Shown here piece by piece: positions 9,721-64,000 of a DNA stretch of 64,000 nt. Source of the DNA: Pavona decussata (lineage: Eukaryota); NCBI GenBank assembly GCA_977016875.1, contig CDRNST010000066.1, positions 1,116,001 through 1,180,000 of the forward strand, given 5' to 3'. Positions within the stretch are counted from its first letter, which is position 1, and each line of letters starts with the position of its first letter. The position numbers were made by a program, and so were the translations under genes. The notes beneath the pieces are model-generated. The model worked only from the letters and a program-made list of their open reading frames with translations. It did not search any database and had not been told where the DNA came from.

Positions 9721-10139
9721 AGCAATGTTTTCATTTGCTGTTGGTTTATATTGTGCACTATTTTGCAAAATGTTTTCCTTTATTAAAAAAAAAAAACAAA
9801 CTTCGGAGTCTGGCTGAAGATGTCCTTCAGTGAGTTGAGTCAGAAAAGTCGAAAGCAATGACGCGTGTGATCACTCATTTAAAAAAAAATACTTTTGTTG
9901 CGGCTCGATTATCAGGCGCCGTGAGGAATACCGGCGGAACTGATTTTCCGTTAGATTCCCTTGATAGCTCCTAGGTAGAAAACAGCTTGTTTACATTTTC
10001 TGACCACAAACATGCAATAGTAAAGCTTGACCACTTGGTTATTGGCAGCGCCGGGTTCAACGAGCGAGATAGAAAGTGTTTAGTTTGCCGCAGAACTTGT
10101 TTTGTAGCGGTAAAACTCGTGTTGCAAGTCACGATTAGA

Positions 10140-10410
10140 TTTGGTTTTGTCTTGACTGTCTTTGCCTCGCATTGGTTGACAAAGTACCGCGCGTAAAGCA
10201 AGCCAAAGCAGAAGCAATGCACGTTCGCTTTGCTTTTCTGCGCTCTGTGATTGCCTAGTTGGTTAGCAAAATTCGTGTCACTCTCAACCAATGAGAAGAA
10301 AAACCAAACCAATCCTGAGTTGCTTGCGCGCGTTTTCCCGCGCTTGGCGCCGGTGACATATATTTGCTTCGAATTAGGATCGGCTTATGGGCATCTGTTT
10401 TTGTGATTTT
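10140..10410. repeat. Dispersed repeat family (CCAATC...GCGTTTTCCCGCGCTTGG...TTGCTTCGAATT); related copies at 55660-55905 and 53730-53810 (opposite strand)
   Basis: Shared core AAACCAATC..CGCGTTTTCCCGCGCTTGG..TATTTGCTTCGAATT at ~10305-10375 and ~55755-55830. Confidence 0.6.
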
Positions 10411-11061
10411 CTCAAGAAAAATTTGTTTTTGTTTGTTTAACGGAAGCGCAGTTAAAGAAGCCCCTTAAAACAAGAAAACAAATTAGTACTATTGGATACC
10501 GGAACACCAAACTGAACTGAGCCTTGGAGGTACAACGCGCGAAGTAAACAAGAGCTCGCAATCCCGATCGTAAAGAATAGAGCTCTACAAACTCTTTCAA
10601 ACGCTTGCACTGTCAAATAACAACATATAATTTCTTTTTACACCAGGAGAAACGAATACCTCCCGCGCCTCCACCCCCTCCCCACTCCCACACTCACCAA
10701 ACAAACCACCAAAATACATGAAGAAAACAATTCCCGAGCAAATTTTTGGCTAGAGAGTAAATTCCCTACAATCCTGGCACAAACTTAGACTTTCTCAAAG
10801 TCGCTCGCTCGCTTCTCATTGAATGGAGCTCTTGCTCGCTCGCTCGAGCTCTAACAATCGCGCTTCGCGCTCTCTCCCGACCGTTAAGCAAGTCTAGCAC
10901 AAACTGTGTGATCCCGAAAACTAAACAAAATCTTATCAAAATAGTTCTTCGGATTTTTCGTGAAAATCTCACCCTGGGCGGCAAGCTGCACAACACAACA
11001 GTAATTTCACTACAGCGGAAGAAATATCTTTAAGAGATGACAAACAACATTTGTTTTGGCG

Positions 11062-12243: not shown

Positions 12244-13386
12244 ATGGTAAATACAACAGCGAACAACAGCGAGGTCATCCTCGGTAATCAACCAGCAGGG
12301 AGAAAGAAACCTCTTAACTCAGAGCCAGTTCCTGATTGGATAGAAGCACAAGCTGTGTTCAAATGGGGCTGGGAGGTGCACTGGATCTCATTCGTGGTGC
12401 TGTTTTTGGGACTTGCAGCCTACTCTACCTTATGTCTCATTGCGGCTTCCAGAAAGCGACGGTTGCGGGAAAAGGTGTCCCGCAATGTATCGTACGCTGT
12501 TCACTCATTGATTATAGTCCTCGGGATTACCCGCGCGCTGGCGCTGGTACTCTTCCCATACGAGATGACAACCCATATCAACAATGCAGACATAGTTATC
12601 CCGCTTTACGTTCATCGAATTGTTTTTGGTCTCGGCTTCCCTTGTTTCATGGCTGCGTTTGCTCTGATTCAAATTACGTTCACGGCGAGCGTAAAACCCA
12701 CGCCTTTGACATACTCCAAGCTACGCAAAGTCCGGTTCTTGGTGCTGGTAATCGTAGGACACTTTAGTGTCGTCATCATAGCGGACGTGGTGACAGCAGT
12801 GGTGGAGAATACCTCGGCTCTGTACATGGTGTGTACCGCATATCTGCTAGCCATGACCCTGTTCACAGCCATTCGGATCACAAGGACCGGTTGTAAAGTG
12901 GTTCGCGAAAACACGGAGCATAGGGCAGTAATTGGAAGATTGGACTCAAGTAACGTGCAAGCACCGTCTTGCATCCCACGCCGAATCAAGCGCTCGTCGT
13001 TCAGCTCCAAAGCCGTACGCAAAGTGTTCATTATTACCTCACTGACAATATTCTTCTGCATCGCGCTTTTCGCGTTGAAAATCTACGATCTAGTTGAAGT
13101 GATACAATTTACTTTTGTGTGGGAAAAAAATACGACACTGGCGCCTTGGCCTTGGTTCATTCATGAAACTTTATTTCGGTTAACGGAATTCGCGTTGGCT
13201 TGCACTGTACTGTACGCCGTTTCACCTTTAAAACCACTAGAAAAGAGCTTCTTCAGTTGTTGTCGCTGTTGTACAGGCAAAAATGAAGTAAGTGACCTCG
13301 CACCACCGCGGCCAAGAACGGGTACAAATGAAATGGTGCTCTCCACTCCCCCTCCTCTAAACCCTGCCGACAATACCCGTTTGTAA
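12244..13386 (+). CDS. Proline-rich transmembrane protein 3/4 (PRRT3/PRRT4)-like 7TM protein, 380 aa, intronless CDS
   Basis: Seven hydrophobic helices; PDW..A...W.W.WE.H motif before TM1, RALAL.L.PY in TM2, LGFPC in TM3 and PWPW...TLFRL.E in TM7 are characteristic of the PRRT3/4 membrane domain. N-terminal N-glycosylation sequons (NTT, NNS), a Cys cluster after TM7, and C-terminal -TRL. Confidence 0.78.
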   Translation: MVNTTANNSEVILGNQPAGRKKPLNSEPVPDWIEAQAVFKWGWEVHWISFVVLFLGLAAYSTLCLIAASRKRRLREKVSRNVSYAVHSLIIVLGITRALALVLFPYEMTTHINNADIVIPLYVHRIVFGLGFPCFMAAFALIQITFTASVKPTPLTYSKLRKVRFLVLVIVGHFSVVIIADVVTAVVENTSALYMVCTAYLLAMTLFTAIRITRTGCKVVRENTEHRAVIGRLDSSNVQAPSCIPRRIKRSSFSSKAVRKVFIITSLTIFFCIALFALKIYDLVEVIQFTFVWEKNTTLAPWPWFIHETLFRLTEFALACTVLYAVSPLKPLEKSFFSCCRCCTGKNEVSDLAPPRPRTGTNEMVLSTPPPLNPADNTRL

Positions 13387-13648
13387 AATATACGTACACT
13401 CAAGGCTTCAGTGTCACCATTACTGTGACGTCTTATAAAGGGGAGCGGTGAAGATCAGTAAAGATAAAACAATTATAATACGTTACTCTGGGCTAGTTTT
13501 CTAGAAAAGTAATTGACGAAACAGCAGATTGTCATTCCAACATCGGTATGGCAGGGAGCATGCCAATATATCAAGAAGGTACTTCTTGTCTCCGGAAATG
13601 ACTAAGAGAAGTACATGCAAATAACAATCAGCATAATTAAAAGATATA

Positions 13649-13881: not shown

Positions 13882-15491
13882 AATTTGTTATTTCTTGAAA
13901 CTTAAGCTAGCTTCTGCTCGATTCAGTTTTGAGTTCCGTCGAGGAAACTTTTCTTACACGTTTTAGTCTTGTAGTAAAAACCGCTTTTGATATTTACATG
14001 AACAATATTAATATCATCGTTATTTGTCAGCAATATCGCAATTGAGACTATCTTATTTATTTAGCATTCTTCACACATAATCTTGGGAGTTCGAATTGTT
14101 GGTACTTTTAGAAAAAAGTACATTTTTTATTGAGTGATGTACTAGTCAACCATCGGCGTTGGACTTGTGGTATGAGAACAACACCAGCTCCGATTTGCTG
14201 AAAGGCAAGAATTGCATTCAAATTAAACAATAAAATACTATGCCATTAAATTCCTGACACTAAATATTTCTTCAAGAGGCGCAAAAATAGTACAAGCAAA
14301 AGCATATTCTAATTAAGGTGGCTGAACACAGTTAGTAGAACCTACGTCTCATTTGATTTGACTTCCAAATCGAACATGCCAAAGTGTAACCTCAAACTAA
14401 GGGAATTGTTATTTTGTTAGTTCAGCTGAGCTTGATGTTGTATCCATGGTACATGACAATTTATGAACCAACATTAAAAATTGAGTATTGTTTATTTGCC
14501 GAAAATTCAGTGTCATTAAATCTCCTTCGTCATTTGTCTGTAACAAACTATACAATGGTCCAGTCATTAGAATTTCTCGAGAAAATGGCGCATTTCAGTT
14601 GAAAGTCACAAACACACTTTGTCACAGTCTTTTGGTCAACTGTGCGAGTGCGCATGTGCTGGTATCAACTCATTCTCGGCCCCAGACCCTTTGGCTTCAC
14701 TGCACAAGTCCTAAAGGAAAAAAACATATTCTCCCCGCCTTCAGTCATGCGCAAAACGGAAGAGCTCTGGGGTCAAGAATATGTATCAACTGAATTTTAA
14801 CAACATACATTAAAGCTGGATTTCTTTCGAAGTGAGACTGCAGACTGGCGAGTGATTTTAGTGAGAAAATAGTACTATTTATCCAAATGAAACGAAAAAA
14901 ATATTCCTTTATCGAACCCACAACCTCCAGATTTGATCGTCCGTTGCTCTATCGACTGAGCTACGAGTAGCACAGTCTTGTAACACCATCTTCTGTCCAG
15001 CTTTCTCTAACATATTCCTCTTTTGTTAACTCACGGCTTATGCTACAAAAAAAGCCAGTCCTAATTAAATATCTCAAGAGTGTTTAGTAAAATCAGAATT
15101 CCTTGGCTTGTATCGTTTTGCCCTCCTCATCGTATATGGGTGGAAGAGGTTTTGCAAATATTTCGGACGTAGATGGTCGTTGGTTTTATCAAGAGAATTC
15201 TATATCTTGTAAACGTCTGTCGTAAAAAAAATGGAGATGAGGCCTGCTGCAGTAGATTCATATAGAGTACGATCTGTTAGTGTAGAAAAACATTTTTATT
15301 ATCAGCTTGCATCACAGAATTTAAAATTACAATCAGATCGAGGCAAAAGCCAGGGGCTTATATGGTATGAAGCTGGTCAGAGGTACGAGAAATTACAAAT
15401 CAAGATCTGCTAATCAAAAAGGTCAACCGAATAATGCCTGAATATTGTTTTGAAATACTATACTGCCATTTAACTGGTTTTTGAGAAATCT

Positions 15492-16829: not shown

Positions 16830-17833
16830 TCAGTTTAAAAGTTTTCCTTCTGTTGTACTTAATTATCCGTATTTAATTTCCATACAAATTAATTTAATCA
16901 AAACAACAAATAAAGCTATTTGTTATAATCAGGAAAATTAAGTTGATTTCACCCTCAACAGTTTCAGGCTTCTAGTAAAAAGCATTTAATGCGAGTCTTG
17001 ATTTTTCCATTTAATTTTGTGCTTATTTTTTATGATAAGCCGGAGCCAAACCTTTAGGCAAATGACTCGCGAACAAATTGCTCTTCTATGCTGAACATGC
17101 CACAGATAATTGAAATTTTAATAAGAAGCACGTTCTCCAAGCATAGCTTTGTGCTAGTGCTTAGAAAGCAAAGGATATTCATCATTCATCGTTGCAATGC
17201 GTGGTTTTGCACAAAGACGGCAAAGGAAGGATGTGCAAGGAAGCGATACTGTGGGGTACGTATAAATATCGAAAGACATGACCTTCGCGCAATTCGCTGT
17301 GGTTAAGATAAATCGCTCGTTGATCAATAAATATGGATATTTGAGGACTTAAGAGATCAAGAGTTCCATTTCTGTAACCTATTTATTGGCCAATAGATTA
17401 TACAACAAGAGCCTTAGAGCCGCATACATCTACTAAACAAAAGATTCACTGGTGTGAGACGAACAACGCCTTGGCGCGCTGAGTTCTGCATTCCGCTTGA
17501 AGCGAAAACAAAGCCTGCAACCGCCGTCGATAATTCCGAGCGGGAGATATTGTTAAACCTAATTAACAAGTCAAATTTATGGGCTGTGATTTCGTGCAGA
17601 TATAATATATCAGTCTAATACGAGCGCGCTGTGTTTATTTGCTGACGATACGTCCTAACCTCTGTACGTGTCTGCTTGTGACAGTCTGATACTTTGGCCA
17701 GAGTTAGGTGCGAATTCTTATTGAAGGATTCGGAGCTTTTTAAGTCGCTTGCTAAGGAAATAAGGAGAGTGATAGAAACATTCCTTTGCAAGTTTACAAC
17801 TGAACTTTTCGCTTGAGTGAAACAACAAACAGC

Positions 17834-19075
17834 ATGTCTGAGAAAGAGAAGAAAAAATCTGTCTCAATCTTTTCGCTGTTTCATTGCTGCGTCAACGGCG
17901 GATCAAAGCCAAAAGTACAGAGGAAAAGTGGCGCGTACGGTGATACTAAGGATGCACCACCTGAAGAAGGCAAAGAAGCTTTAGAAAATGGTAATGCTGG
18001 CGACAAATCCGGCGACTTGGAATTAGAATACAAGCCCGCCCCAGCAGATCCTGTGGTCTCTCCGAGCGATGATTACAAACCGAACTACGAGGAAGCTAGC
18101 ACCGCGTCTGTCGCACCATCCAGCGTAGGAAGCGAGGAGGATTCCAGTTTTAATGCGCCTGGTAGCATACAAGTCGTACAAGAGAATGGCACAGCTTCGG
18201 GACACCCGCGGGAAATTGGGACTGGCGGGCGGCTCAATTTGCAGTTCGTCTACGATTCTGAAACCTCGAAGCTGACGCTAACTATCCTAGGCGTGGAATT
18301 CCCGCCTTTCCAAAACTGGAAGATGGATGATTTGGAGATTAGCTGCATGCTGTTGCCCATTCGACAACACAGTTTTCGCGCTCGCCCCAAGAAGTTTAAA
18401 GAACCATTCAGCATGATCCTTACGCCAAAGGACAGAATAAACCAGATGTCACTGCGATTCCGCTTGTACGACCACCGCGCCATGTCCAAGCACATGATTG
18501 GCCAAGGAGTGGTGAGTCTCAACGATATCAAGTTGGGTCCGCAAGCAGTCACCATCGCACTGGATCTCAACATTCCCGAAACCTACGCCATCGATTCCCG
18601 CTACATTGCGACCATCACGGGTGAGAGCGGGCAAACACCCGCAGAGGATAGCAAGCCCGAGCTATTGTTGTCTCTGGAGTACCGCTCTCTGACGCGAAAA
18701 CTCCTCGTTGAAGTTATCAAAACCCGCAATCTCGGCCTTCTAAACAACTCCAAGCCGCAGGATATTGCTGTTGAGATGAAGCTGATGGGCGAAAGCAACC
18801 AAATGCTGCGGGTCTGCCGCACCACGCTCAAGCGTCACGTTATCGACGCCGAATTCAACGAGATGTTCATGTTCCGCGTGACGTACGAGAAGCTGGCGAA
18901 TGTGAGCGTGATTTTCACGCTGTTTCGCATTGGCGACAGGCGAGGAAAGAGAGAGAACATCGGGGAGGTGTGCTTTGGTAAGCAATCCAGCAGCCATTTG
19001 CAACAGGACCACTGGAATGAAGTGGTAAAGGGAAACGAAAGGGTCGTCACAAAATGGCATCCTTTGTTTAAATAA
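17834..19075 (+). CDS. Synaptotagmin-14/16-like tandem C2 protein, paralogue A (413 aa, intronless, no TM helix, N-terminal CC)
   Basis: First ATG at 17834 within ORF 17813-19075. C2A (GRLNLQFVYD...MLLP...LRFRLY...MIGQ), C2B (PELLLSLEY...FNEMFMFRV...IGEVCFG), and a WNE...KWHPL C-terminal motif. LRFRLY and the lack of most Ca2+-binding Asp residues point to the SYT14/SYT16 group. Confidence 0.88.
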   Translation: MSEKEKKKSVSIFSLFHCCVNGGSKPKVQRKSGAYGDTKDAPPEEGKEALENGNAGDKSGDLELEYKPAPADPVVSPSDDYKPNYEEASTASVAPSSVGSEEDSSFNAPGSIQVVQENGTASGHPREIGTGGRLNLQFVYDSETSKLTLTILGVEFPPFQNWKMDDLEISCMLLPIRQHSFRARPKKFKEPFSMILTPKDRINQMSLRFRLYDHRAMSKHMIGQGVVSLNDIKLGPQAVTIALDLNIPETYAIDSRYIATITGESGQTPAEDSKPELLLSLEYRSLTRKLLVEVIKTRNLGLLNNSKPQDIAVEMKLMGESNQMLRVCRTTLKRHVIDAEFNEMFMFRVTYEKLANVSVIFTLFRIGDRRGKRENIGEVCFGKQSSSHLQQDHWNEVVKGNERVVTKWHPLFK

Positions 19076-19768
19076 GGTTAGTTCTGATGGCTTGTTTCTG
19101 TAAACAATGCATCGTGCATGATGTTAAGTATAATAAACTCCTGCCAAACTCCTGCCAAAAAAAAAGGTTTGTGCTTGAATGCAACAAAAACACTTGGGAA
19201 AAGTGTTGGCCGCTAAATTATGGTCGAAAGTAACTGATCTTAATTCTTGCCAAATGTTTGTTTTGTACATTTTTGTATTTGCAAGCTCGTCTTGGCGAGA
19301 AATGGAACTGGGCGAGTTGTTCTCGTCAACTTTTTAAACAACTTTGCAGTATACCGAAACTAGCAGTTTAAGTAAGAGAGTCCATCGAAACGTGTTTCGT
19401 ATACTTTTACACCCGAGCAAGAATAGAGCGTACACAAAATTGCCATTTAACCGGGACTGACGCAATAAATTGGCTGTTTAGGCAAGTTCGTCGTTGAAAA
19501 GTCAAATTTGACACAAATTTGTCTACTTAGTTTGCCATGTCTGTCTGTTGTGTTGTTGGTTTATCTTATCTTGTCATTCTTTGGAAGTTTTCTCAAGTTT
19601 GTAAGCACTTGGAACTGAATTTTCATGTTGTCTGAAATACTTTTGTTTCTTTATTCACCGTCTCGCTTTCAAGAAAGCTCAATTTTGAAATAATAAAAAA
19701 AACGTCCTAAATCTCATTTTTTGTCAAGTCAGTTACAAGCAAAGAGCACCATATTAAATATTTTTCAA

Positions 19769-40166: not shown

Positions 40167-42009
40167 ATGGCCAGTTTGGTGGGATGTTTAACGAGGAGGA
40201 AAAGAGTTTGCCAGGAAGAGAAAACTAACACTGAATTGTCTAAGTGTCTTACAACATGGGACTTAACATCGCTCGGGATTGGCGCTACTCTGGGCGCGGG
40301 AATTTACGTTGTGTCCGGACAAGTTGCAGCGAGTATCGCGGGACCAGCAGTAATCATCTCGTTCGCTTTAGCGGCATTAACATCCATTCTCTCAGGTCTG
40401 TGTTACGCTGAGTTTGGCGCACGTGTTCCCAAGACAACTGGATCAGCATACGCTTACAGTTATGTCACAGTCGGGGAAATATGGGCTTTTATTATCGGAT
40501 GGAACTTGATTCTAGAATACATGATAGGTACTGCAGCAGATGCTAGAGCGTTAAGCGCCTGCTTTGATTATGTCATTGGAAACGTGATCCGGAATTTAAC
40601 CCTGACCTACATTGGGGAGATAAACACTCCAGGTCTGGGTACATACCCAGACATACTATCCTTCATCGTCACAATCATTGTTACTATTGTTCTAGCTATT
40701 GGTGTCAAGCAATCTTCAACGTTCAGTACGATTTTTAACGTTCTAAACTTCTTAGTCGTAATTTTCATTGTAGTAGCGGGGATGTTCTTTGTTGACACAA
40801 GGAACTGGACAGAAGGAAAAGGCTTTTTCCCGTACGGGGCATCTGGAGTCCTGAGTGGAGCAGCGACCTGCTTTTACGCTTATGTTGGTTTTGACATCAT
40901 CGCTACAACAGGAGAAGAAACTAAAAACGCACCCAAATCTATTCCAATCGCAATTGTGGCATCCCTGGTTGTTATTTTTGTTTGCTATTTTGGAGTGTCT
41001 ACGATAGTAACACTAATTGTTCCTTTCCATCAGTTGGACAAGCTTTCACCCATACCTAATGCGTTCGTCCAGAGAGGCTTTCCAATGGCTAAGTACATTA
41101 TTGGCATGGGCGCTGTTTGTGGTCTATCGTCGAGCCTCTTAGGCTCCCAGTTTCCTTTACCTAGGATCATTTATGCCATGGCCTCAGACGGCTTGCTATT
41201 TAAGTTCCTGGCTAGTGTGAACCCAAGGACCGAGGTCCCTGTTGTGGCCACGGTGTTCCCTGGCATTCTAACAGCAGTTATTGCTTTGTTGTTTGATTTA
41301 AATGAGCTAGTTGAGATGATGTCCATAGGAACATTGTTGGCGTACACACTAGTGTCACTTTGTGTTTTGATCTTGCGATATCAACCAAATATTCCGGAAG
41401 ATCCGTTTATTGACAAGTGGTATCTAAAGGAACCCGAGATATACGGACAACTTTCAATGTATGATCAATCACCAGACGAGCATGAATATGAAATTACCAC
41501 AAATAAAAAACTACACTCTTCACATCTTACGAAAAGCAGTCGAGAACACGATTTCCATTCATCGCAGAAGGATTTCGCCAAATCATACAAAAGGACTCCG
41601 AGCCAGAATCTACAAAATAAACTCAAGAGGGGTCCCACGGCAGAAAGCGTCCGAATAGTGAACTGGGCTGTCGCGCTGCTCTTCGTGTCCTTCGTTGGAT
41701 TCTGCAGTGCCACAGTTTACGGTCTAGAAGCCATACAGAGACACAGTCATGTCATTCTTGTGTTCCTGGCAATTTTTGGAGTCCTCAGCGTATTTGCTAT
41801 TGTGGTAATTTGTCTTCAGCCGCAGAACACAAACGAGATATCATTCAAAGCACCATTTGTTCCAGCTTTGCCTATTCTCACCATTTTCTTCAATGTGTTT
41901 CTTATGCTGAAGTTGTCAAGATTGACATGGATTCGCTTTGGGGTCTGGATGGGTTTAGGTTTGTTCTTCATATTCAATTTATTGAATAGCCGACAGATCT
42001 TCGATATCA

Positions 42010-42043
<34 letters not shown>

Positions 42044-43205
42044 TTTATTAAAAACTGGGTCATTTTATATTGCAATTCCAGAGTTTTGGTTGGCTTAGCG
42101 GCCATGGTATGTGAGCTAATATATACTTCCCGAAAAAGAGCGACCAATGAGTTTGTCTTCTGGTCGTCCTTGCAAAATGAAATCAGTTACAACCAGCATT
42201 ATTTAGTGGTTGTTGGATATGAGATGATTATAGCCAACTCCTCATTGGCTATCTATCATCTTATCCAATGAGCGCTTGTGGAATAATTGTTGACTATGGT
42301 TAACTTGCTAAACGCTACTGTTGAAGCTCATGTAGAAGTCAGATGAATTTTTTTTGAAATGGAAATAGACGAAATTGTCACGACTGACACACCTGGCCCC
42401 TGGATTTTGGGATCGTTGGTGTCGATATTCGTTCGCATAAATTAGCTTCCACTTCAAGTTAAAACAGGAAAAATTTAACCGTAGGAATGTAAATATCGTG
42501 TTAAAAATGTTTGCTTCGTTTAGAGGCGTCTCACTTTTCCTGGCCTTTTCATCCACCCTTCACACTCTTAGCAACATATTTTGAGGACGTCTGCTTATGG
42601 CGCAAAAAGAAAAAATGTGGTTAAGTTACTTTCTGGTCAAGGACAGTGAATGATAAGTGGTTGAAGTTGGGCATTTCAGTAATGAGGGAAATTTGAGCCA
42701 GGTTTACCAGGAAATCCTGAACATGGGCCAGGCTTACCTGCTTTTTTACCTGATTTTGACCAGAGGCTTTCACTTACCTATTTTCCTATCCTCTATAACA
42801 TAACTTGTCATAAATATTGGTTCAAGAACTTATCATTTTATTCCTAATCTCGCCAACTGTGACATAAATAACCAACACAGAAAAGTGACACTGCCGACTG
42901 AAGGGAAAGCGCCTGGGTGAAAGGGTTAACACTACCTCTCCGAACTTGCAATTTCAATGCTCAACCATTCTCTCTTTCTTTTAGGTATGTTATTATACTT
43001 TGGATACAGCATCTGGAACAGCAGAGAAAGACTCCAAATGTCTCGCTTGGAGCAAAGGATATTTGACAGACAAGTTCTTCTGGCGGATGATCCAGATTAT
43101 GTTGACATTGAGTATGAAATGAATACCATTCCAGCTCATAGGGAAGAAGAAGAAGAAGAAGAAGAAGATTTTCCACCAAGTCCATTTAAATGGGATAGTC
43201 TATAA
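40167..43205 (+). CDS. SLC7A14: Cationic amino acid transporter, SLC7A14-like (670 aa). Exons 40167-41958 and 42985-43205
   Basis: 14-TM CAT fold with GATLGAGIYV, CYAEFGARVPKTTGSAY (the KTTG insertion is SLC7A14-like), GFDIIATTGEE, EMMSIGTLLAY and F.APFVP. Phase-1 intron G|GTTTGT ... CTTTTAG|GT joins to GMLLYFGYSIWNS and an acidic tail. Confidence 0.85.
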
Positions 43206-54076: not shown

Positions 54077-56002
54077 TTGTTTGATTCCCACTGATTGAGA
54101 ACGTGGCGCGAGTCACAGAACAGTTATGTAAACTTAGAGTAAGCCTCAGTGAATTACTCTCAACACTCAATTGAAGAACACTCTGATAAACGTTTGTATC
54201 AAAACAATTAGCTCTCGTTCTCTATCACGTGAAAGTTGATAAGCGTACAGCCTGAATCAACTGTCACTCGGTAGAAATGTCGAGCTCACTCTCATTGTCA
54301 AATAGAAACGAGGACAAATTACAGTTCGTCTTTCCATACGGTGCGAGTAGCCTTTCTACTTCTCTCAGATTCTATGCTTGTGGAAATGAAACAAGGAGGG
54401 ATTAGGGAGAGAGAGCTTCCTCTTTTCTGTGCCTCGATTTGGAAAAAAACAGGGACTGATCGCAGTCTAGTCACTCCACATTGTTCAGTTTCTCGTTCGA
54501 TCAAGCTTATGCTCGTGTTAACGTTTTTATTAATTCTATACAAACAGACAAAATCTTCCCAATCTCCTATGACAGACTATGAGTTTCCATAGAGTTACAG
54601 AAATGGGGCTTTCAACCCGGCATTCAGAGTGTTCGCTCAGAACAGGTAATAAGAAGGGCAACAAGATATGTGTTTCACATTTGAGAATGCTAGGTAGTAA
54701 CAATGGCGTGTAATACATAAATAAACAAAAGAAATAAATCACTTCATTTAAGGGTCGAGCGCAAATGGAACATGAATACATGTATACTGAGACACATCAA
54801 CCGCAAGATAACAGCTTCGTTTTATTTACATGAAGCACTAGTACACCTGTGACAATATCATTTGTATAGTTATAGATTGTCGTACATAAATATTATCTTT
54901 ATACTTCAAGGCCAATTTATACCTAAAGTGTCATAAACGTCTTAATCAGAAAATACCAGGCAGAATTTTGCGTACATTCGGATTAATCCAAAATACAGTC
55001 CATTAACAGAACGAGAAATGGCATCCAACAGGCAAAACAGGATCAAAAAACTCCAGTAAAACACAACTAGTTATAAGTTATTTTCGAATAAAAAACGGGT
55101 CCACATTGCGACAAGGGAAAAATAAAATTGGGCGTGCGCATGTCATTACACTTCCCCTCTGACGTGAAGGAGATGATCGAAATTTGGGTTCGAGCTACCA
55201 TTGCAAACGTGAACCGATTCTAGGTTTAAACTCAACCGTTTCACGTATTCGCATAAAATGCTACCTATTACTTTTTTACTTATTATACTACTAAATAAAT
55301 ATAATATGACTAATTTCGAGCGCTCAGCGCCAATTTAAAATAATTATTATTATCATGAACAAATCCACAAAATAACCAGTTGCTGAATTTTTTATTCTTT
55401 ACGTAAAGGAATGAAAGGGAATATTTGAATTAAAAATCAACATAAGTGACCTTTATAACAAGGTAAAAAAATACATGTTTTGAAAGAATCTGAATGGTCC
55501 CTATAATATATTCTCTCGGTATCACTGCTATCGGGTGAACCAATTGTAAGCCTATTAGGCTAATTTTATACCCCGGCATTAGGGCGCGTAGATTTTAATT
55601 CAGGCCACAGAAAAACCGAGAAAAATTGCAGTAAATCGACTCAATAACACAGTTTTCAATCAAGTTTTTAAAAGCAACTTCGCCTTTGCTTTACCACGCT
55701 TTGTGACTGGTAAGAAAAACTTGAGACACTTCCTTTCCCAAAGAAAAGAAAAACCAAAACCAATCGCGCCTCGCTCGCACGCGTTTTCCCGCGCTTGGGG
55801 CTGGTTACACGTATTTGCTTCGAATTGTGATTGGTTCATTGAGCTGCTTTCGTCTGCCCCTGATTGGCTAAAGTAATTACTTTGACACTCAGCTGAAAAC
55901 TGCTCCAAGCACTCAAACAACAAATAATACGCTTCAAAGTTTAGAGGCGCATGGCGAAATTTTATTGGACGTAGAAGAGATGTGACTAATTAATCCTTAA
56001 TT

Positions 56003-58616
56003 TTAACTATCTCGTAGCTCTTCTTGATTATTTTGTCCGTCCATTTGCTCTAAAGGCACATAACCTTCTTGCTCTTGTTGCCTCTTGCCTTCCACACTGT
56101 GACGTAGACCATAAAATAAATAAATTGATAAACCTGTGGAAAAACAGAACAAGAAATTGTAAGATACCCTAATTAGAAACAACTGGCTGTTTACTGGTTG
56201 AATTAATTAAGTGTCTCTATTAAGACGAAGCCTGATAAAGAAACATTAATGTAAAATGATTTTTGTTTAAAAGTAAATGAAAACTTCATGCATGCGGCCA
56301 AGTATTACTCAAAATCGCGCGAAACAATTATCCCAGAGGCAACGAACGATGGCATCAATTCCGAATGGACTATTTTACGCAACCGATCCCGAGTCTCGTA
56401 AAAGATACTACACAAAATAAAGATTGCCAAAAATACGAACCGAATTAGGAGCAAGTGTGTTCTCGACTAAGGCTATATGGAGAAAAGTTGTCCCGGGAAA
56501 GAGGGTCACCCTCCCAGCCGAGTCAACTTCAGCGAGTGTTTATATGAGAAAAAAGTTGACCCCTTTGCCCAACAGCCCTCGCGCATGCTCTGATTGTCTC
56601 GCCTTGACGGAGTTGACCCGGCGAGGCAAGCCAAAGTGTATATATGGAAAAAAGTTGGCCCGGCTAGGAGGGTGACCCTACCATCGAAAAAGGGTGACCC
56701 GGCTAGGCGAGTGACCCTTCTACCCGGGACAACTTTTTTCCATACAAACAGACTACTGTTGAAACGAAACATTTATTACGTTAAAGCGAAATTATTTCTG
56801 AAGCTGGTACAACGACAGGTCTGGAGAGCAAAAAACTATTTCATTTCGAATAACAAAATCTTAGCGGGAGTTTTTATCCCAGTTATAAGCTATATCGGAC
56901 ACAATACCCCTCAAAACCCATTAACTTAATTTATTTTGCTAATCGGTTTTGCGGTTATCCGTGTGCACAAATTGCGAACCTATGATTTTGGCAAAGGCCG
57001 AGAATCTCACCTATCGCCATCCAAACTGCAAACCGCATCCACGTGGCCGGGTTAAGTTCCATCATAAGATAAATATTGATAAACATGGACGCGAGAGGCA
57101 GACAAGGAACGAGCGGAACCTTGAACGGTAATGGCGTTAGACTTTTGGGTTGCATACTCAACACAATAATGGCAGCTACGAAAACTATGACCAACAACAC
57201 TGCGAGTAAAATGGCCCACGCCTCGCCTTGATACATGGGAATAAGGCCATTGATCAGAAACGCGCTAAAACAGAAAAAGTAAAAGAATAAAAACCAAATC
57301 ACGCGTTTTGAAATCATCCCTGTTCGTTCCGTTGGCTCTCGTGCCGGTTTCGTCGACTCGGAACTCGAATTTACGTCTTCCTCGGTGCTTTTCACAAAGC
57401 CGATGGTACCGGGTTGATATCGTAAAATAAGCACTGAGGTGGATACGATTGTGTACGCTTGAAGTGTCCCTATGGACATCATTTCTACAAGGGCCTGCAG
57501 CTCGAAGATCATTGCGAGAAATCCGGCCAGAACCCCTGAGAAAAGTGTTCCAACAAAAGGGACCTCGGTGGTCTTACTGACGCAAGCGAAACTTTTGAAA
57601 ATAAGTCCGTCCGAGGCCATGGCATAGAGCAGGCGCGGCAGAGGGAAAAGCCCGCCGTTTATAGCTGCTGTCATTCCACAAAGCGCGCCGACCGCAATAA
57701 TATACTTAGCAAAGTACGCTCCTCGGTGTTCAAAGGCTTTCGGCAACGCCGCCCCATAATCCAACTTGTTATAAGGCCAGATCAAAGTGACGGCAGCAGA
57801 AACGCCAAAATACGCCAAGAAACAAATCGTTAATGCTATCAAAATAGACAACGGAATGGTTCTGCTTGGGTTTTTCGCTTCTTCACCCGCTGTTGCAATG
57901 ACGTCAAAGCCAACGAAAGCAAAGAATGCCGTGGCGGAGCCCGCGAGGACGCCCGAAGGTCCGTACGGCATGAAATTGGACCAGTACTGCGGTCTGGCCA
58001 GGATAACACCCATGACAATGATAAAGACAATGACAACGATGTTTATACAAGTCACGCCGAATATGAACACAGTAGATTTTTTAACACCAAACAATTGAAT
58101 AATCATAAGGATGCTTATGATCCCGACTGCTAAGAAATCAGGATAACTGCCTAGTCCATCGATCTGTATGGATCCAACATGTTCAAGAACCCAAAATCTA
58201 ACTTTATCGTGTATCATGGAATCGAAATAGGCACTCCACGCTCGTCCAATTGCTGCAGCCCCTATCATATACTCCATTACAAGATTCCAACCAATGATAA
58301 AAGCGACTAACTCCCCAACAGTCACATAACTATAAACGTAGGCTGAACCAGCTTTGGGCACGCGTGCGCCGAATTCAGCGTAACAAAGTCCAGACAACAC
58401 CGACGCGATTCCAGCGATTAGAAATGAGATCACTGTAGAAGGGCCAGCAACATCGCGAGCAATTTCACAAGCAATGACGTACACGCCAGCACCAAGAGTA
58501 CAACCAACGCCTAGAGCGGTTAAATCGAGTAGAGACAAACAACGAGCGAGTTTTGTTTCCGATAAGCTCGCTAAATCAATGCACTTGCGTCTTGAAAATT
58601 TTCGAAAGCAGCCCAT
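56003..58616 (-). CDS. Cationic amino acid transporter, SLC7A1-4/CAT family, body B (578 aa). Exons 58616-57011 and 56133-56003
   Basis: GCTLGAGVYV, CYAEFGARVPKAGSAY, GFDVIATAGEE, EMMSIGTL and FKVPLVP motifs. Donor ATAG|GTGAGA (phase 1) and acceptor TTTTTCCACAG|GT give GLSIYLFYGLRHSVEGKRQQEQEGYVPLEQMDGQNNQEELRDS*. AATAAA (minus strand) at 55966-55961. Confidence 0.92.
56470..56754. mobile_element. MITE (Harbinger-like) in the CAT terminal intron
   Basis: ATATGGAGAAAAGTTGTCCCGGG / CCCGGGACAACTTTTTTCCATAC inverted ends; internal repeats of AGGGTGACCC and ATATG.AAAAAAGTTG. Confidence 0.72.
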
Positions 58617-59823
58617 GCCTCCTTGACAATGAACAAAAGTCTGCCTGTGAAAGCTGTACTTAGCGGCTTAAACTGGCTAAATTTTAAAGAAACTGTGTCT
58701 TTCCTTTCTTGTTTGTTTGCTCACGATAGTTGAAGACCCATATTTACAAAAGCTCGGTTTTCCTTCCGTGAAAAAATCCAAATCTCTGATTAAAAACCAC
58801 GGTGAATTTCTTGATGATTACAAGATGCGCCACGTACATTCACCCTGTTACGTACCACACTGATGACGTATCAGTTCTCCTTACTTGTTTTCACCCGCTG
58901 AGAGAACCTAGTTATGAGAATCTAGCTTAAAATCAAAAAAACTTGTATATTCTTCGTATTTTTCGTCACGTTCATGGCCTACCAGTTCCATTTGTAAATC
59001 TAAGGAGAACTGAGATTGTGATCATGTATGTGAAAAAGACCTGTAGTTTATAAATAGACCGGTTTCAACCGGTAGTTTTACAGGTAAAAAAATATTGAAA
59101 AAGAGTTGAATGAAATACCAAATACTTTTTAGTTCTAACAGCCGTCGTAGCTAAAAAATTGTAACAGTTGTAACAGTCTGAAAGACAAATGATCAAAGAC
59201 GAACAAATGGGGGACGGGGATATTTAATTTTTTTTTTTTTTTGTCTTACATTTGAGCAACTGTTATTTATTTGTTCTGTTTGTTTATATTTGGGATTAAC
59301 TAGTTTACTTTTTGAGTTCAGCGAATGGTGTCACACTAGTTCATCTTTAGGAACAGGTTTCTTAAATAAGATTAAAAGCAGCCAGTCTTTAAATCAAGAC
59401 AGTACGTTACGCAAGTTCATAGTGGCTGGTTCGATCAAGAATCTAACGTCCCGTCAGTGTAATTAAAAGCAATCGGCAAAGAACGGCTTAAAATAACTTG
59501 AATTTGCTCTATTTGATTTCTTAAATTAAATAACTGTTTACATGTTTTGTTTTGTTTTGTTTTTTTTTTCTTTCCTAGTAGAATTATTAAGTGGTTGTCG
59601 CCTAAAAAGGAGCTTAAAACAGTTTTGCAACTCGTCACCATTGAAGAAAGTTTCAATTTCCGAGTTAATAATTATTATCTTGGTTAACTGGTATCAGTGT
59701 CAATTTTTTTTTACCGTTACCCGGTCAGCAATGTAATTTCTTTAAGGTCATCTGTGCAAAGCGCCAGAATTTAATTGAGTGAAAATTAAACAAATGAATT
59801 TAACTTTTATCCTCACTCCTGAC

Positions 59824-59834
59824 TGCGCATGCGC
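59824..59834. promoter_or_regulatory. NRF1-type palindrome TGCGCATGCGC, candidate element of an internal promoter for CAT body B; a CRE/ATF-like TGATGACGTA lies at 58861-58870
   Basis: Consensus motif matches about 1.2 kb and 0.25 kb upstream of ATG 58616 on the minus strand. Motif-level evidence only. Confidence 0.3.
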
Positions 59835-60774
59835 GGACGATGAATTGGGACATTTATAAAGAAAAAGAACAAAATATTTAAGATAACATAAACATGCCGT
59901 TAAAATTTTTCAAAGTTTCTTTCCCAAGAATCGTTCTTTCTCAAGAAAAACATTAACCATCTACTAACAAGACAAATTGCAGGAAACCGTAGTACCACAA
60001 GTGAAGGAAGAACCAAACCTTGTCATATAAGTAGACGAAAAGCACTCATAAATTGTCGTGTTGTATGAGCCGAGAGAAGGTTAGCATCTCCCTCGATAAG
60101 GACGAGAAAAGTCTTCGGACTTTCAACCTACAACACATGGTTAAGGCTATGCCACTTACTTTGTGGCATCTAACCAATTTTTTAAGATCTCGAGGTCCTT
60201 AGCAGCGCTCAGTTCCGCTGTTTCTGGAATTCTCTTATTTGGCCATTATTTCCTCCTCTGCACGATGGACTCGAATTTAGAAAATGCGAAACAAACTTGG
60301 AAAGTTCACCGCATATATAATGACATATGGTTCGTTATCAATAAATTTACCAACTCAGCAATGACTCTCCCAAACAGAAAATAAATAGCAGAGGCAAATG
60401 TTTGGTATTTTCACCCATCCTATGGCACTGACAACAAGGAAATTACAGCCGAGTTACAAAAGATTAACAGCTACCTGTGCTACGTTTTGATTTTGTCGCG
60501 TAACGTCGACGTTTAAAAGTCCGACGTTAATTGAAATAGCTGTGCACATGGCGAGCAAAGCACCTCTGATTTATTTAGAAAACGTAGCAACAACTATTTC
60601 AGTTTCGTCCTGTTAGCAAGCGTAATGAGAAAACCTGAATTCTCATCGGTAGAACACTGACGAAGCAGTTTTTTGCTACAATATTTCAACTACAACAACA
60701 ACGCAAAAACGCGCTTTAGGAACCATCTGAACTATATAGTTCTAGCAATATTTCTTGATTGTTTTTTTTTTTTT

Positions 60775-60873
60775 TACAATTATTCCGCTCGCGCTTGATG
60801 GATATGAAATGATTATAGCCAGCGAGGCGCGTATATCATCTCATATCCAACGCACACTCGTAGAATAATTGTT
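60775..60873. repeat. ~100-bp palindromic repeat (ACAATTATTC...GAATAATTGT family; relatives at 4223-4972 and 42045-42292)
   Basis: ACAATTATTCCGCTCGCGCTTGATGGATATGAAATGAT ... ATCATCTCATATCCAACGCACACTCGTAGAATAATTGT. Confidence 0.7.
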
Positions 60874-60930
60874 ATGAAATAACCTGCAATACGTGTAAGG
60901 ATATTATACATTTTTTTCTCTAGAACTCAC

Positions 60931-61989
60931 CTATAACCATCCAAACGGCAAATCGTATCCACGTCATATAAGAAAGCTTCAGAATAAGGAAGACATTGAT
61001 AAATATGGAGAGCAGTGGTATGGCCGGTACACAAGGCGCTTTAAACGGCAGGGGCGTCTTGTTCTGGGGCTGACGTACAAGGAGCACTATACAGGCGATC
61101 AGGAGAACACCTAATACAACAGCCAGGCAGATGGCCCATGATCGAGCCTTCAAAAGGGCCTCACCTCCCCAGATTAGAAAGATACTTAAGAAGAAGAACA
61201 TTAACACGCTGCAGTAGATTCCAATGGCCGCACGACGCGCCGTTTGCAGAGTGGGGCCGTTATTGCCCTCGGTCAGTCGGGTGTCCTCTTCAGCTGTTTC
61301 TTCTTTGAGCAGGTTTTCCTGGCTGGTTGAAAATATACTTTCTCCTCCCTTAACAATGCCTACAGTGCCGGGCTGATAGCGGAGCAACAGCACACACAGG
61401 GCCACGATTGTGTAAGCTAGCAGAGTACCAATGGACATCATTTCTACTAGGGCTTCAAGGTCAAATATCAGGGCAAGAAACGCCGCAAGAGCGCCTGACA
61501 GGACAGTGGCAATAACTGGGATCTCTGTCTTAGGATGTACCTTAGCTAGAAACCTAAAAGGAGAGGGAATGAACGAGAAATTAAAACTGTTCGCTTTAAA
61601 GCGTTTTCCTTTTTATGATTGTCATGAGCAATTCACGTGTGCGTTGGTATTGCTTTTCTATGTTCTGTCACTGACTGAGATAAAAATGGTACATGAAACG
61701 GATTACATGCAGCAAATGACAAAAGCTCTAAGAAAACAATTAGTTTTCCCTTACTTGAAAATGAGGCCATCGCTCGCCATAGCGTACAGCATTCTGGGTA
61801 AAGGGAACAAGGCCCCTATTAGCGAGGCACTCAATCCACATAGGGCACCCACAGCGATGATGTATTTGGCCCACGCGGCTCCTCGCATCGCGAACACTTC
61901 TGGAAGTGCGCTTCTTTCAGCCAACTGGTTATAGGGCCACATGAGTGTTAACACGGCAGAGACACCAAAGTACGCTACGAAACAAATAC
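60931..61989 (-). CDS. Cationic amino acid transporter, SLC7A1-4/CAT family, body A, internal exons 61989-61755 and 61553-60931. 5' exons lie beyond the window; the terminal exon is probably 56133-56003
   Basis: TTTCGTAG|GT-ICFVAYFGVSAVLTLMWPY...LFPLPRMLYAMASDGLIF-K (AA|GTAAGG, phase 2), then CTTTTAG|G-FLAKVHPKTEIPV...EMMSIGTLLAY...TWIRFAVWMVI-G (G|GTGAGT, phase 1). No stops or frameshifts in either exon. Confidence 0.88.
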
Positions 61990-62469
61990 CTACGAAAGAA
62001 ACAACAAATAAAAAAACATAAGCGAGTTCACAATATAAAAAGGTTGTAACACGCACGTTTCAGGGTCAATCTTTCGGGAAATTAATATTTTTTTTGGCGA
62101 ATACAAAACCATGTCGCACGACAAATTAAAAACTCAATTCACGTTTCACGGATAATTATTATGAAAAACCACGGATGCTTGGCTCTTGTCACTTCGGAAG
62201 GGAAACAAAACAGTCATTACTTATTAAGCCAAAAAAATGGTAATTCGCAAGTTACGAAAATGCTCCTTACCACCAGTACAAAACCACTAAATTATACACC
62301 GTTCGCTACATAGCAGTTAGTGTGTGATATGTTTTTCTTAGCGTCGTGAGCTCAGTGTTAGAATTTAATTTTGCCATGTTAGAAAATTCTCACTTTCTGA
62401 TGAAGTCCTTTTGCCTTTTTTTAATTACCAATTTGAACTGGAACTGACGGCATGTGACGCTTTTTACGT

Positions 62470-62650
62470 CACCGTTTTCACCTGTCCACATTAGAAACGG
62501 TGCGTTTTCGAAAGTCTGCACTTTTGAAATCGTTTTCGAAAGTCTCCGTTTTTATCGGCGTTTTTGGGCATTTTAGTGTGGACGATAGGCGAAAACGCAT
62601 CAAAAAGTATGCGATTTCAAGCGAAACGCATTAGAGTGGATGAGGCCTTA
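62470..62650. mobile_element. Partial Harbinger-type MITE
   Basis: GTCCACATTAGAAACG / TTTTAGTGTGGAC / TTAGAGTGGATGAGGCCTTA terminal-type motifs and repeated CGTTTTCGAAAGTCT. Confidence 0.45.
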
Positions 62651-64000
62651 GAATGTCTCCAGTAAAACGCAGTTGGCAAACAGCCGCAGGAACATGGCGG
62701 TTTAATGACGGATGAAAGTCATGGAGTTTGAACGCAAAAAAGACCCACTTTCCGTCATCGCATGAGGATATACCTTAGAAATCATGTACTTTAGGACATT
62801 AACAACCAATCAAAGGAAAATAAAAGGTGACCGACAATTTGATCGTAGTAGCACTTTAAGTAAACAGGCTCTTTTTTATGAATAGACGGCCTAAACTAAA
62901 CGTTGCTAATTTGGACCACAAATTAAATCGAAGCGATTGCTTTTATTCGGTTTCTCTCAGTAAAAGAAAAATCCAAAACAAAAACCAAAATATGTTTCCG
63001 ACCCTGTGAGGAATTTTTCGGTGACGTGTTTGAAGACTTCTCGCCAAAATGTATGGCAAAACTTAGCTCATGACAGAAATTTTGTCTTTTTGCTTTGCGG
63101 AGTAGACGCATCTGGTCTTATCTGCCCATAAAAGCGCATGCGTTACCATTTCCGAGCACAGTTGGCTTTTTCAGTCGAGTGCGTCCATCATGGAAGATAG
63201 CTCAAGTAGAGATGACCCCTGAAGAAAACAATTTTCTTCCCAAACGACATCCTTTAACATGACGCACTACCCTTAACATATTTCTCCTCTACCCTCTCTC
63301 TCGCCACGACTTTGCCAACTTCCTTTTTTCTTTCTTTTAATTTTTAATTTTTTTTTCATCCGTATTTTTCCATCCGATTTTTGTCATCCGCCATCCGCAC
63401 GCATCCCGTCCTCCGGTTTTTTCAGACACTCCTGAGAAAGAACAAATCCAATGAACGAAGTACGAACGCCAGCATTGAAGAGTTCGATCACGTTCTCGCT
63501 CCAAATTCTAAAGACGAACTCGCAACCGGAGAAGTACTGATTTAACATCTGCACTGTTTGGAAACAAGTAAATTTTGTAAGCGCCCGATATCAGTTACAA
63601 TAAACCTCCAGATTATAAAATTGAAGAGCAAACACGGATAAAAAGTCAATCAATAGTCTGAAATGTCATCCAACTCCCACCCCCCCCCCCCCCAACCCAC
63701 AAGGGGCGTTAGGGGGAGGAGATGGCTGCCATTTCAGACTAAACAATCAAAAGAAACAAGAATTTAACGGCTGGTTTAACTGACTACGCTATCCGCAATA
63801 ATAATTTGTTATCTGACGTTCCTGACGCAGGTTTGGACGGTTTTACCGGTGGAAACAGGTGTTGAACTCTACAGCTGGTAAAAATCAATTCAACAGAGCA
63901 CGCAGTACACACGTTCTATAAAATGTTGTATAAATTTGCAAATGAAATCGGAGTGTTATCATTTACAACAAAGTTTGCTAAGCAACAACCAACCAGTGGT

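Follow-up and report, generated by a model that had tools for sequence, protein, structure and literature searches.

A probable two-tier cationic amino acid transporter locus in the coral Pavona decussata, with variable bodies joined to one shared tail exon

Introduction

How can two different transporter bodies that lie one behind the other on the same strand both be completed, when a single C-terminal exon is found downstream of them? The question is raised by a 64,000-nt stretch of the coral Pavona decussata (contig CDRNST010000066.1, hereafter C66, positions 1116001-1180000 of the forward strand; the whole stretch is called the window and numbered 1-64000), whose minus strand carries two bodies, A and B, of cationic amino acid transporters (CATs). 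An initial annotation, made from the letters only, had proposed that A splices across 4.8 kb holding the whole of B and that both bodies receive the same cytosolic tail. Assembled RNA contigs now bear out both proposals, with joints at exactly the predicted bases. We conclude with high confidence that this is one compound CAT locus built on a variable-exon/constant-exon plan, with two nested tiers and one shared tail exon, from which two transporter versions, and probably a third (C), are made.

The RNA evidence consists of Logan assembled contigs from four RNA runs (X1, X3, X10 and X13) placed on window positions 56000-61999; runs X1, X3 and X13 come from three separate studies (P1, P2 and P4). 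Reading frames of spliced products were checked by exon-length arithmetic. Tail exons were sought by tblastn and with a profile hidden Markov model (HMM) built from 64 distinct CAT tails, taken from database matches and run on six-frame translations. Features beyond the window end are given in C66 or window-equivalent coordinates.

Two Donors and One Acceptor

The joint from the last exon of body A (A3) to the tail exon, 60931>56133, occurs in runs X1, X3 and X13, hence in three studies, and skips 4797 nt including the whole of B. The raw joint was placed at 56131>60929; a shift of the cut by two places rightward gives an intron of 56134-60930, bounded by GT..AG on the minus strand. The contigs of X3 and X13 hold 132 letters on the tail side of this joint and extend 156-242 nt past base 56000, beyond the stop codon into the 3' untranslated region (3'UTR). 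They also hold the joint between exons A2 and A3, and their loose end behind 61990 matches the 3' end of the first exon A1 at window-equivalent 64333. Since the same contigs carry the A1 end and both joints, a single assembled molecule reads A1-A2-A3-tail.

The joint from body B to the tail, 57011>56133, is carried by one contig of run X1 that spans 57009-57666. It skips 877 nt (intron 56134-57010, GT..AG on the minus strand); the raw joint was 56131>57009, and the cut two places to the right gives CT..AC on the plus strand. Both joints into 56133 are in frame. The donors of A3 and B thus share one acceptor, while the A1 donor uses the acceptor of A2. Body B itself is tiled by contigs over 57009-58625 in X1, X3 and X13. 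The fourth run, X10, is a coral metatranscriptome in which repeats were covered and no exon, and it gives no evidence either way.

Several points weigh against this account of the locus. The data are assembled contigs only, hence without transcript starts, ends, strand or levels, and the runs are classed as 'RNA by guess'; contigs of X1, X3 and X13 nevertheless hold intron-less GT..AG joints, because of which the runs can be said to contain RNA. The joint from B to the tail comes from one contig of one run, with 24 (plus 4 ambiguous) letters on the tail side. Speaking for a shared exon, in turn, contigs of run X1 specific to A and to B both end 24 letters into the tail plus a shared ATAG (4 letters), and an end some 24-28 nt into the tail is expected of a k=31 graph at the point where two paths run together into one exon. 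Among the points against, the contigs over A3 deviate from the window at about 3% of positions and hence derive from other individuals or a close lineage. For the third version, the matches to exon C from this or a sibling species are unspliced open reading frames (ORFs) only.

As to these differences, about 20 of them in exon A3 (61000-61510) are common to the contigs of three studies, with a concentration at 61190-61310, and body B differs by 0-1.5%. Exon A3 seems to be represented by a diverged allele or to reflect a lineage difference.

Exon Anatomy of the Locus

On the minus strand the order is C, A1, [A2, A3], B, tail; the variable exons are paralogues in tandem and all have the same orientation. 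Body B consists of one open 1606-nt variable first exon (57011-58616; sequence, Pfam and RNA contigs) that runs from its ATG to TM14a, the first part of transmembrane segment (TM) 14, through 535 codons plus one base, and closes with ...WMAI-G|GTGAGA. Exon A3 (60931-61553, 623 nt; TM9/10 to TM14a of the A and C bodies; sequence, Pfam and RNA contig pieces over 60929-61551) closes with ...WMVI-G|GTGAGT. Both bodies stop one base into the glycine codon (phase 1). The claim that A and B are intact, diverged paralogues on the same strand ending at the same codon and phase was correct to the base.

Upstream of A3 lie a 201-nt GT..AG intron (61554-61754; raw joint 61551>61753 in X1, X3 and X13) and exon A2 (61755-61989, 235 nt; sequence and RNA), which opens the constant block that follows the alternative first exons A1 and C. 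The remainder of the window, 61990-64000, is part of the A1-A2 intron, and the first exons themselves lie beyond its end. In the flank sequence, A1 (793 nt) occupies C66:1181124-1180332 (window-equivalent 65124-64332) and C (799 nt) C66:1185682-1184884 (window-equivalent 69682-68884), 3.8 kb further upstream, both on the minus strand. Each has an ATG start, no internal stop, a length of 3n+1 and the same phase; the donors are GTAAGA (A1) and GTGAGC (C). Body A had been taken to be 61989-60931. Its two exons in that span (61989-61755 and 61553-60931) stand, but they make up the C-terminal 55% of the body, which begins with A1. A look further upstream for more bodies had been suggested, and exon C lies there. 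Behind exon C, no relics of exons 2 or 3 were found in 65125-68883, and no further bodies were found up to window-equivalent 84000 or among the scored candidates of the whole 602-Mb genome.

The predicted products are all in frame: A of 793+235+623+131 = 1782 nt (about 593 amino acids, aa), C of 799+235+623+131 = 1788 nt (about 595 aa) and B of 1606+131 = 1737 nt (about 578 aa). Identity between variable units is 50-61% in pairwise comparison. Exon C has 61% identity with A1 and 51% with the corresponding part of B; for A against B the values are 60%, 71% and 50% over the three regions that were compared.

The Tail Exon and Its Single Copy

The constant tail exon (56003-56133, minus strand) starts with GT TTA TCA, supplies the last two bases of the glycine codon and reads (G)LSIYLFYGLRHSVEG...RDS*. 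It encodes the second half of TM14 (LSIYLFYGLRHS) and a 30-residue cytosolic tail; the stop codon is at 56005-56003 and the 3'UTR runs on below 56003.

That this segment is required to finish TM14 agrees with the profile matches. B and A3 match positions 1-38 of the 51 of PF13906 (AA_permease_C, TM13-14) and end at their last residue, the tail exon opens with the IY.FYG..HS continuation of the profile, and full-length spliced anemone isoforms match 51/51 across the junction. The tail exon is thus needed by both bodies, because the domain is broken at 38/51 in the bodies and complete in the spliced isoforms. The remainder of the protein, with the first 12 TM helices, is accounted for by PF13520 (AA_permease_2), a domain that is complete in B (E value 1.7e-42; profile positions 1-424 of 427). 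The match of A1, like that of C, covers positions 1-227, and A2 resumes at 229. The best named relatives are all labelled cationic amino acid transporter 1/2/3-like. By these matches the locus encodes SLC7A1-4-like CATs (SLC7, APC superfamily) with predicted transport of arginine, lysine and ornithine.

The initial annotation had scanned 60930-58617 by eye and reported no private tail exon there. Tblastn found no private tail for A or C, and with the tail HMM over 55000-68884, which covers all introns of the locus and 1 kb downstream, the exon at 56133 alone matched (E 1.4e-13, 45 bits), the next-best match having an E value of 0.88 or more. The 29.5-kb locus of the anemone Nematostella vectensis likewise holds one tail-profile match. 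Private copies of the constant exon behind single variable exons were therefore found neither in coral 55000-68884 nor in the Nematostella locus.

A motif Y-V/I-P-L-E/Q is present in every hexacoral tail read and missing from the private tails of the paralogues on contig C20 described below. At a guess, its Y-V/I-P-L part is a tyrosine-based sorting signal.

Paralogues With Their Own Tails

A CAT paralogue on the plus strand of the window has its body at 40179-41957, an intron at the same position and, as had been stated, its own tail exon, which starts at 42986 and reads G-MLLYFGYSIWNS. Two tandem A-like CAT genes with the three-exon body structure of A lie on another contig (C20:2222500-2238000; L015, L016). 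They are the closest relatives of A (70-77% in the first two regions), and between the two of them exon 1 is 90% identical; their private tail exons lie 0.8-1.1 kb downstream and are 64-89% identical to the shared tail over the first 19-22 residues. Since these paralogues have private tails, membership of the family does not impose a shared tail; the shared-tail state is a particular feature of this locus, where it has been kept.

The tail of the downstream C20 gene closes with ...EESTV, a sequence resembling a class I PDZ ligand. On C66 itself, 0.8 Mb away (2007421-2143912), another cluster comprises at least five CAT paralogues, of which some have their body in one exon and others are interrupted by an intron near residue 380.

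Conservation Across Hexacorals

Orthologous loci in other anthozoans were among the checks proposed for the design, and the same layout is found in Nematostella. Its RefSeq isoforms X1 (P0080, A-type body) and X3 (P0033, B-type body) have letter-identical tails, and their called ranges in the genomic locus (L017 10001-19561 and 17065-19561) are nested with a common end base. Along L017 the locus comprises a C-type exon 1a (10001-10804), an A1-type exon 1b (12802-13578), A2+A3 contiguous without intron (14174-15019), the B body (17065-18684) and the tail (19346-19558). This order is the same as in the coral, and therefore the layout C, A1, A2/A3, B, tail dates from before the separation of anemones and stony corals. 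The A2-A3 intron, present in the coral and in the C20 paralogues, is missing from Nematostella, which implies either a gain on the coral side or a loss in the anemone.

Each variable unit has its own counterparts. The best named matches of body B are the isoforms X3 of Montipora capricornis (88%), Nematostella (71%) and Actinia tenebrosa (70%), and A1 is 74% identical to Nematostella exon 1b. In a tree of the first-exon region, C falls with Nematostella exon 1a and with 'X2' first exons from Orbicella, Pocillopora, Montipora and Porites (support 99/97). B forms a group with the B bodies of anemones (99/96), to which hydrozoan CATs are the sister group (97/96). In RefSeq models from other corals, first exons of both the C type and the A1 type lead into a common A2-A3-tail, and the differences between isoforms X2 and X3 of Porites lutea are confined to the first ~265 aa. 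Spliced proteins of other corals that are apparently derived from transcripts also have a C-type or an A1-type first exon joined to A2-A3. These spliced products, together with the exon anatomy in P. decussata, are the basis for the C>A2 joint, and exon C is presumably used in this species as in its relatives.

Most database matches to the B-type and C-type units are ORF calls that run into the intron and are uninformative on splicing. Protein P0011 (576 aa) was considered as a spliced B transcript and rejected, its contig (L018) being unspliced genomic DNA of a related species. A hypothetical protein of Actinostola sp. (P0028, 764 aa) has a C-terminal A-type body fused to a complete B-type body and tail, which is likely a mis-prediction from a nested layout; in this third anemone, too, A3 and B are adjacent on one strand.

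Outside Hexacorallia, no sign of the design was seen among three loci, a very thin sampling. In the Hydractinia locus (L020) an unrelated gene precedes the single body, whose own tail exon follows 1 kb downstream. Of two B-like loci, L021 has a single body with a weak tail match ~9 kb downstream, and L022 a single body for which a tail was not found. None of the three has an upstream body within 10 kb.

Proposed Mechanism and Alternatives

Transcripts that begin at A1, and by extension at C, would have the donor of the first exon spliced to A2 and the donor of A3 then spliced over 4.8 kb, including B, to the tail (intron 56134-60930, which encloses all of B and the intron of B). Transcripts that begin just upstream of B would have the B donor spliced to the same acceptor. 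B would be skippable in A and C transcripts because it is a first exon without a used acceptor. The end of TM14 and a single cytosolic tail would be common to the isoforms, with the result that any signal in the tail would reach all of them, and the TM1-TM14a bodies, ~50-60% identical, may differ in function.

B would be driven by its own promoter within the last intron of A, as the initial annotation had proposed. A putative 5'UTR and promoter of B can be placed at 58617-59048 (minus strand), a segment that aligns at 63-80% with the genomic contig of a related species (L018); alignability is lost further upstream, in the rest of the intron. A second contig (L019, 96% identical; library type not stated) is collinear from 58757, 141 nt upstream of the ATG, through the ATG. 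In the RNA contigs no joint enters B from upstream.

An unlikely alternative shares the tail but dispenses with a promoter for B, whose mRNA would be processed from the long primary transcript of A in an operon-like manner; trans-splicing of a spliced leader to the AG near 58645 would be one such route. The primary transcript of A necessarily passes through B, a plausible acceptor (tttcacag|g) stands 25-30 nt upstream of the B ATG, and the most upstream B contig in the runs stops at 58625. Yet the collinearity of L019 extends past 58645 as far as 58757, the ~430 nt preceding the ATG are conserved with the related species, and no loose end at 58645 was reported in the RNA contigs. To our knowledge, trans-splicing of spliced leaders in cnidarians occurs in hydrozoans, and we know of no anthozoan case, which counts further against this alternative.

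A second alternative is more doubtful still: B with its tail would be the sole real gene, and A, having lost its last exon, would be decaying or ending within the intron, its joints to the tail being by-products of read-through of the 'conjoined gene' kind. The C20 paralogues with the exon structure of A do have private tails 0.8-1.1 kb downstream, and read-through from A3 would yield VIGEF* with an AATAAA at ~60575. The only joint that leaves the A3 donor in three studies nevertheless leads to 56133, in the same contig as the A exons, and the reading frames of A are intact. Termination by read-through near ~60575 is unsupported because 60400-60799 has no coverage in X3 and X13 and is covered in X1 by one thin contig that ends in repeat-derived loose ends. 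An A body without a tail of its own also occurs in Nematostella and among the RefSeq isoforms from Porites, Orbicella, Pocillopora and Montipora, which argues for long-term selection.

That an assembly collapse or gap removed the last exon of A can be practically dismissed: no support for it was found, there are no N letters in the window or flanks, independent RNA contigs skip exactly 56134-60930, the genomic contig of a related species is collinear from 60087 to 55997, and the independently assembled Nematostella chromosome has the same layout.

With the compound locus as the preferred reading, a wider proposal has, in our judgement, somewhat better than an even chance of being right: that since before the anemone/stony-coral split hexacorals have kept a two-tier promoter-choice locus, in which the C, A1 and B bodies would each serve their own cells or conditions and one Y-V/I-P-L tail would bring them to the same membrane domain or partner.

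Comparison With Known Variable-Exon Loci

The variable-exon/constant-exon design is known mainly from the vertebrate UGT1A, GCNT2 and protocadherin clusters. In the clustered protocadherins (Pcdh alpha and gamma) a large variable first exon, which has only a donor and encodes nearly the whole membrane protein, is joined to a constant cytoplasmic tail, and upstream variable exons splice past downstream ones; the joint from B to the tail follows the same plan. Unlike the protocadherins, the coral locus has three variable units rather than dozens and encodes a 14-TM solute carrier instead of an adhesion receptor; its constant part also completes a TM helix, its host is a cnidarian and its promoter choice is putative.

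UGT1A and GCNT2 have tandem paralogous first exons that encode the N-terminal half and are joined to common exons, and the splicing of C or A1 to A2-A3-tail is laid out in the same way. In UGT1A the variable N-terminal half gives substrate specificity. The coral locus differs from UGT1A in having two tiers, the constant block A2-A3 being itself an alternative to body B for the tail exon. We know of no such two-tier nesting in UGT1A, and the nesting of a protocadherin-like and a UGT1A-like tier in one locus is unusual. Loci with multiple variable first exons, UGT1A and GCNT2 among them, have been reviewed (PMC1885805).

Within the same family, mammalian SLC7A2 also yields transporters with differing bodies (CAT-2A and CAT-2B) from one locus. 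CAT-2A and CAT-2B, however, differ by mutually exclusive internal exons of ~42 residues and not by whole bodies with their own start codons. The RefSeq (Gnomon) isoforms X1-X3 of Nematostella vectensis, Actinia tenebrosa, Montipora capricornis and Porites lutea represent the same products as in the coral, as automatic models in which the design is left uncommented, and no published description of it in SLC7 genes or in cnidarians was found in open-access full text. The products are thus already implicit as RefSeq isoforms, and the design joins the known variable/constant-exon loci.

The locus extends this design to cnidarians and to a solute-carrier family, in a form that has been stable over a very long time. 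There is also a practical consequence. CATs turn up time and again in transcriptome lists for coral symbiosis and stress (e.g., PMC7561415), and read counts over the shared 3' end, or treatment of the locus as one gene, would mix up to three predicted arginine/lysine transporters in coral and anemone studies; 3'-tag single-cell data are especially prone to this. Three bodies on one tail further constitute a natural experiment on the role of the CAT C-terminal tail, the C20 duplicates having gained different private tails.

Repeats in the Introns

A short element resembling a miniature inverted-repeat transposable element (GGATATGAGATGAT...GGAATAATTG) is located in the last introns of both A (60835-60874) and the plus-strand paralogue (42216-42290). 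At this element the RNA contigs of all runs break off with loose ends, for which the locus contains no match. The intron between B and the tail holds another repeat (56474-56750) with internal direct and inverted copies (GGGTCACCC.. and CCGGG.. blocks). Its word depth is very high in all RNA runs, reaching ~11,000 in X10, where no exon is covered, and the span of high depth is 56400-56799; it is probably an abundant, transcribed interspersed repeat.

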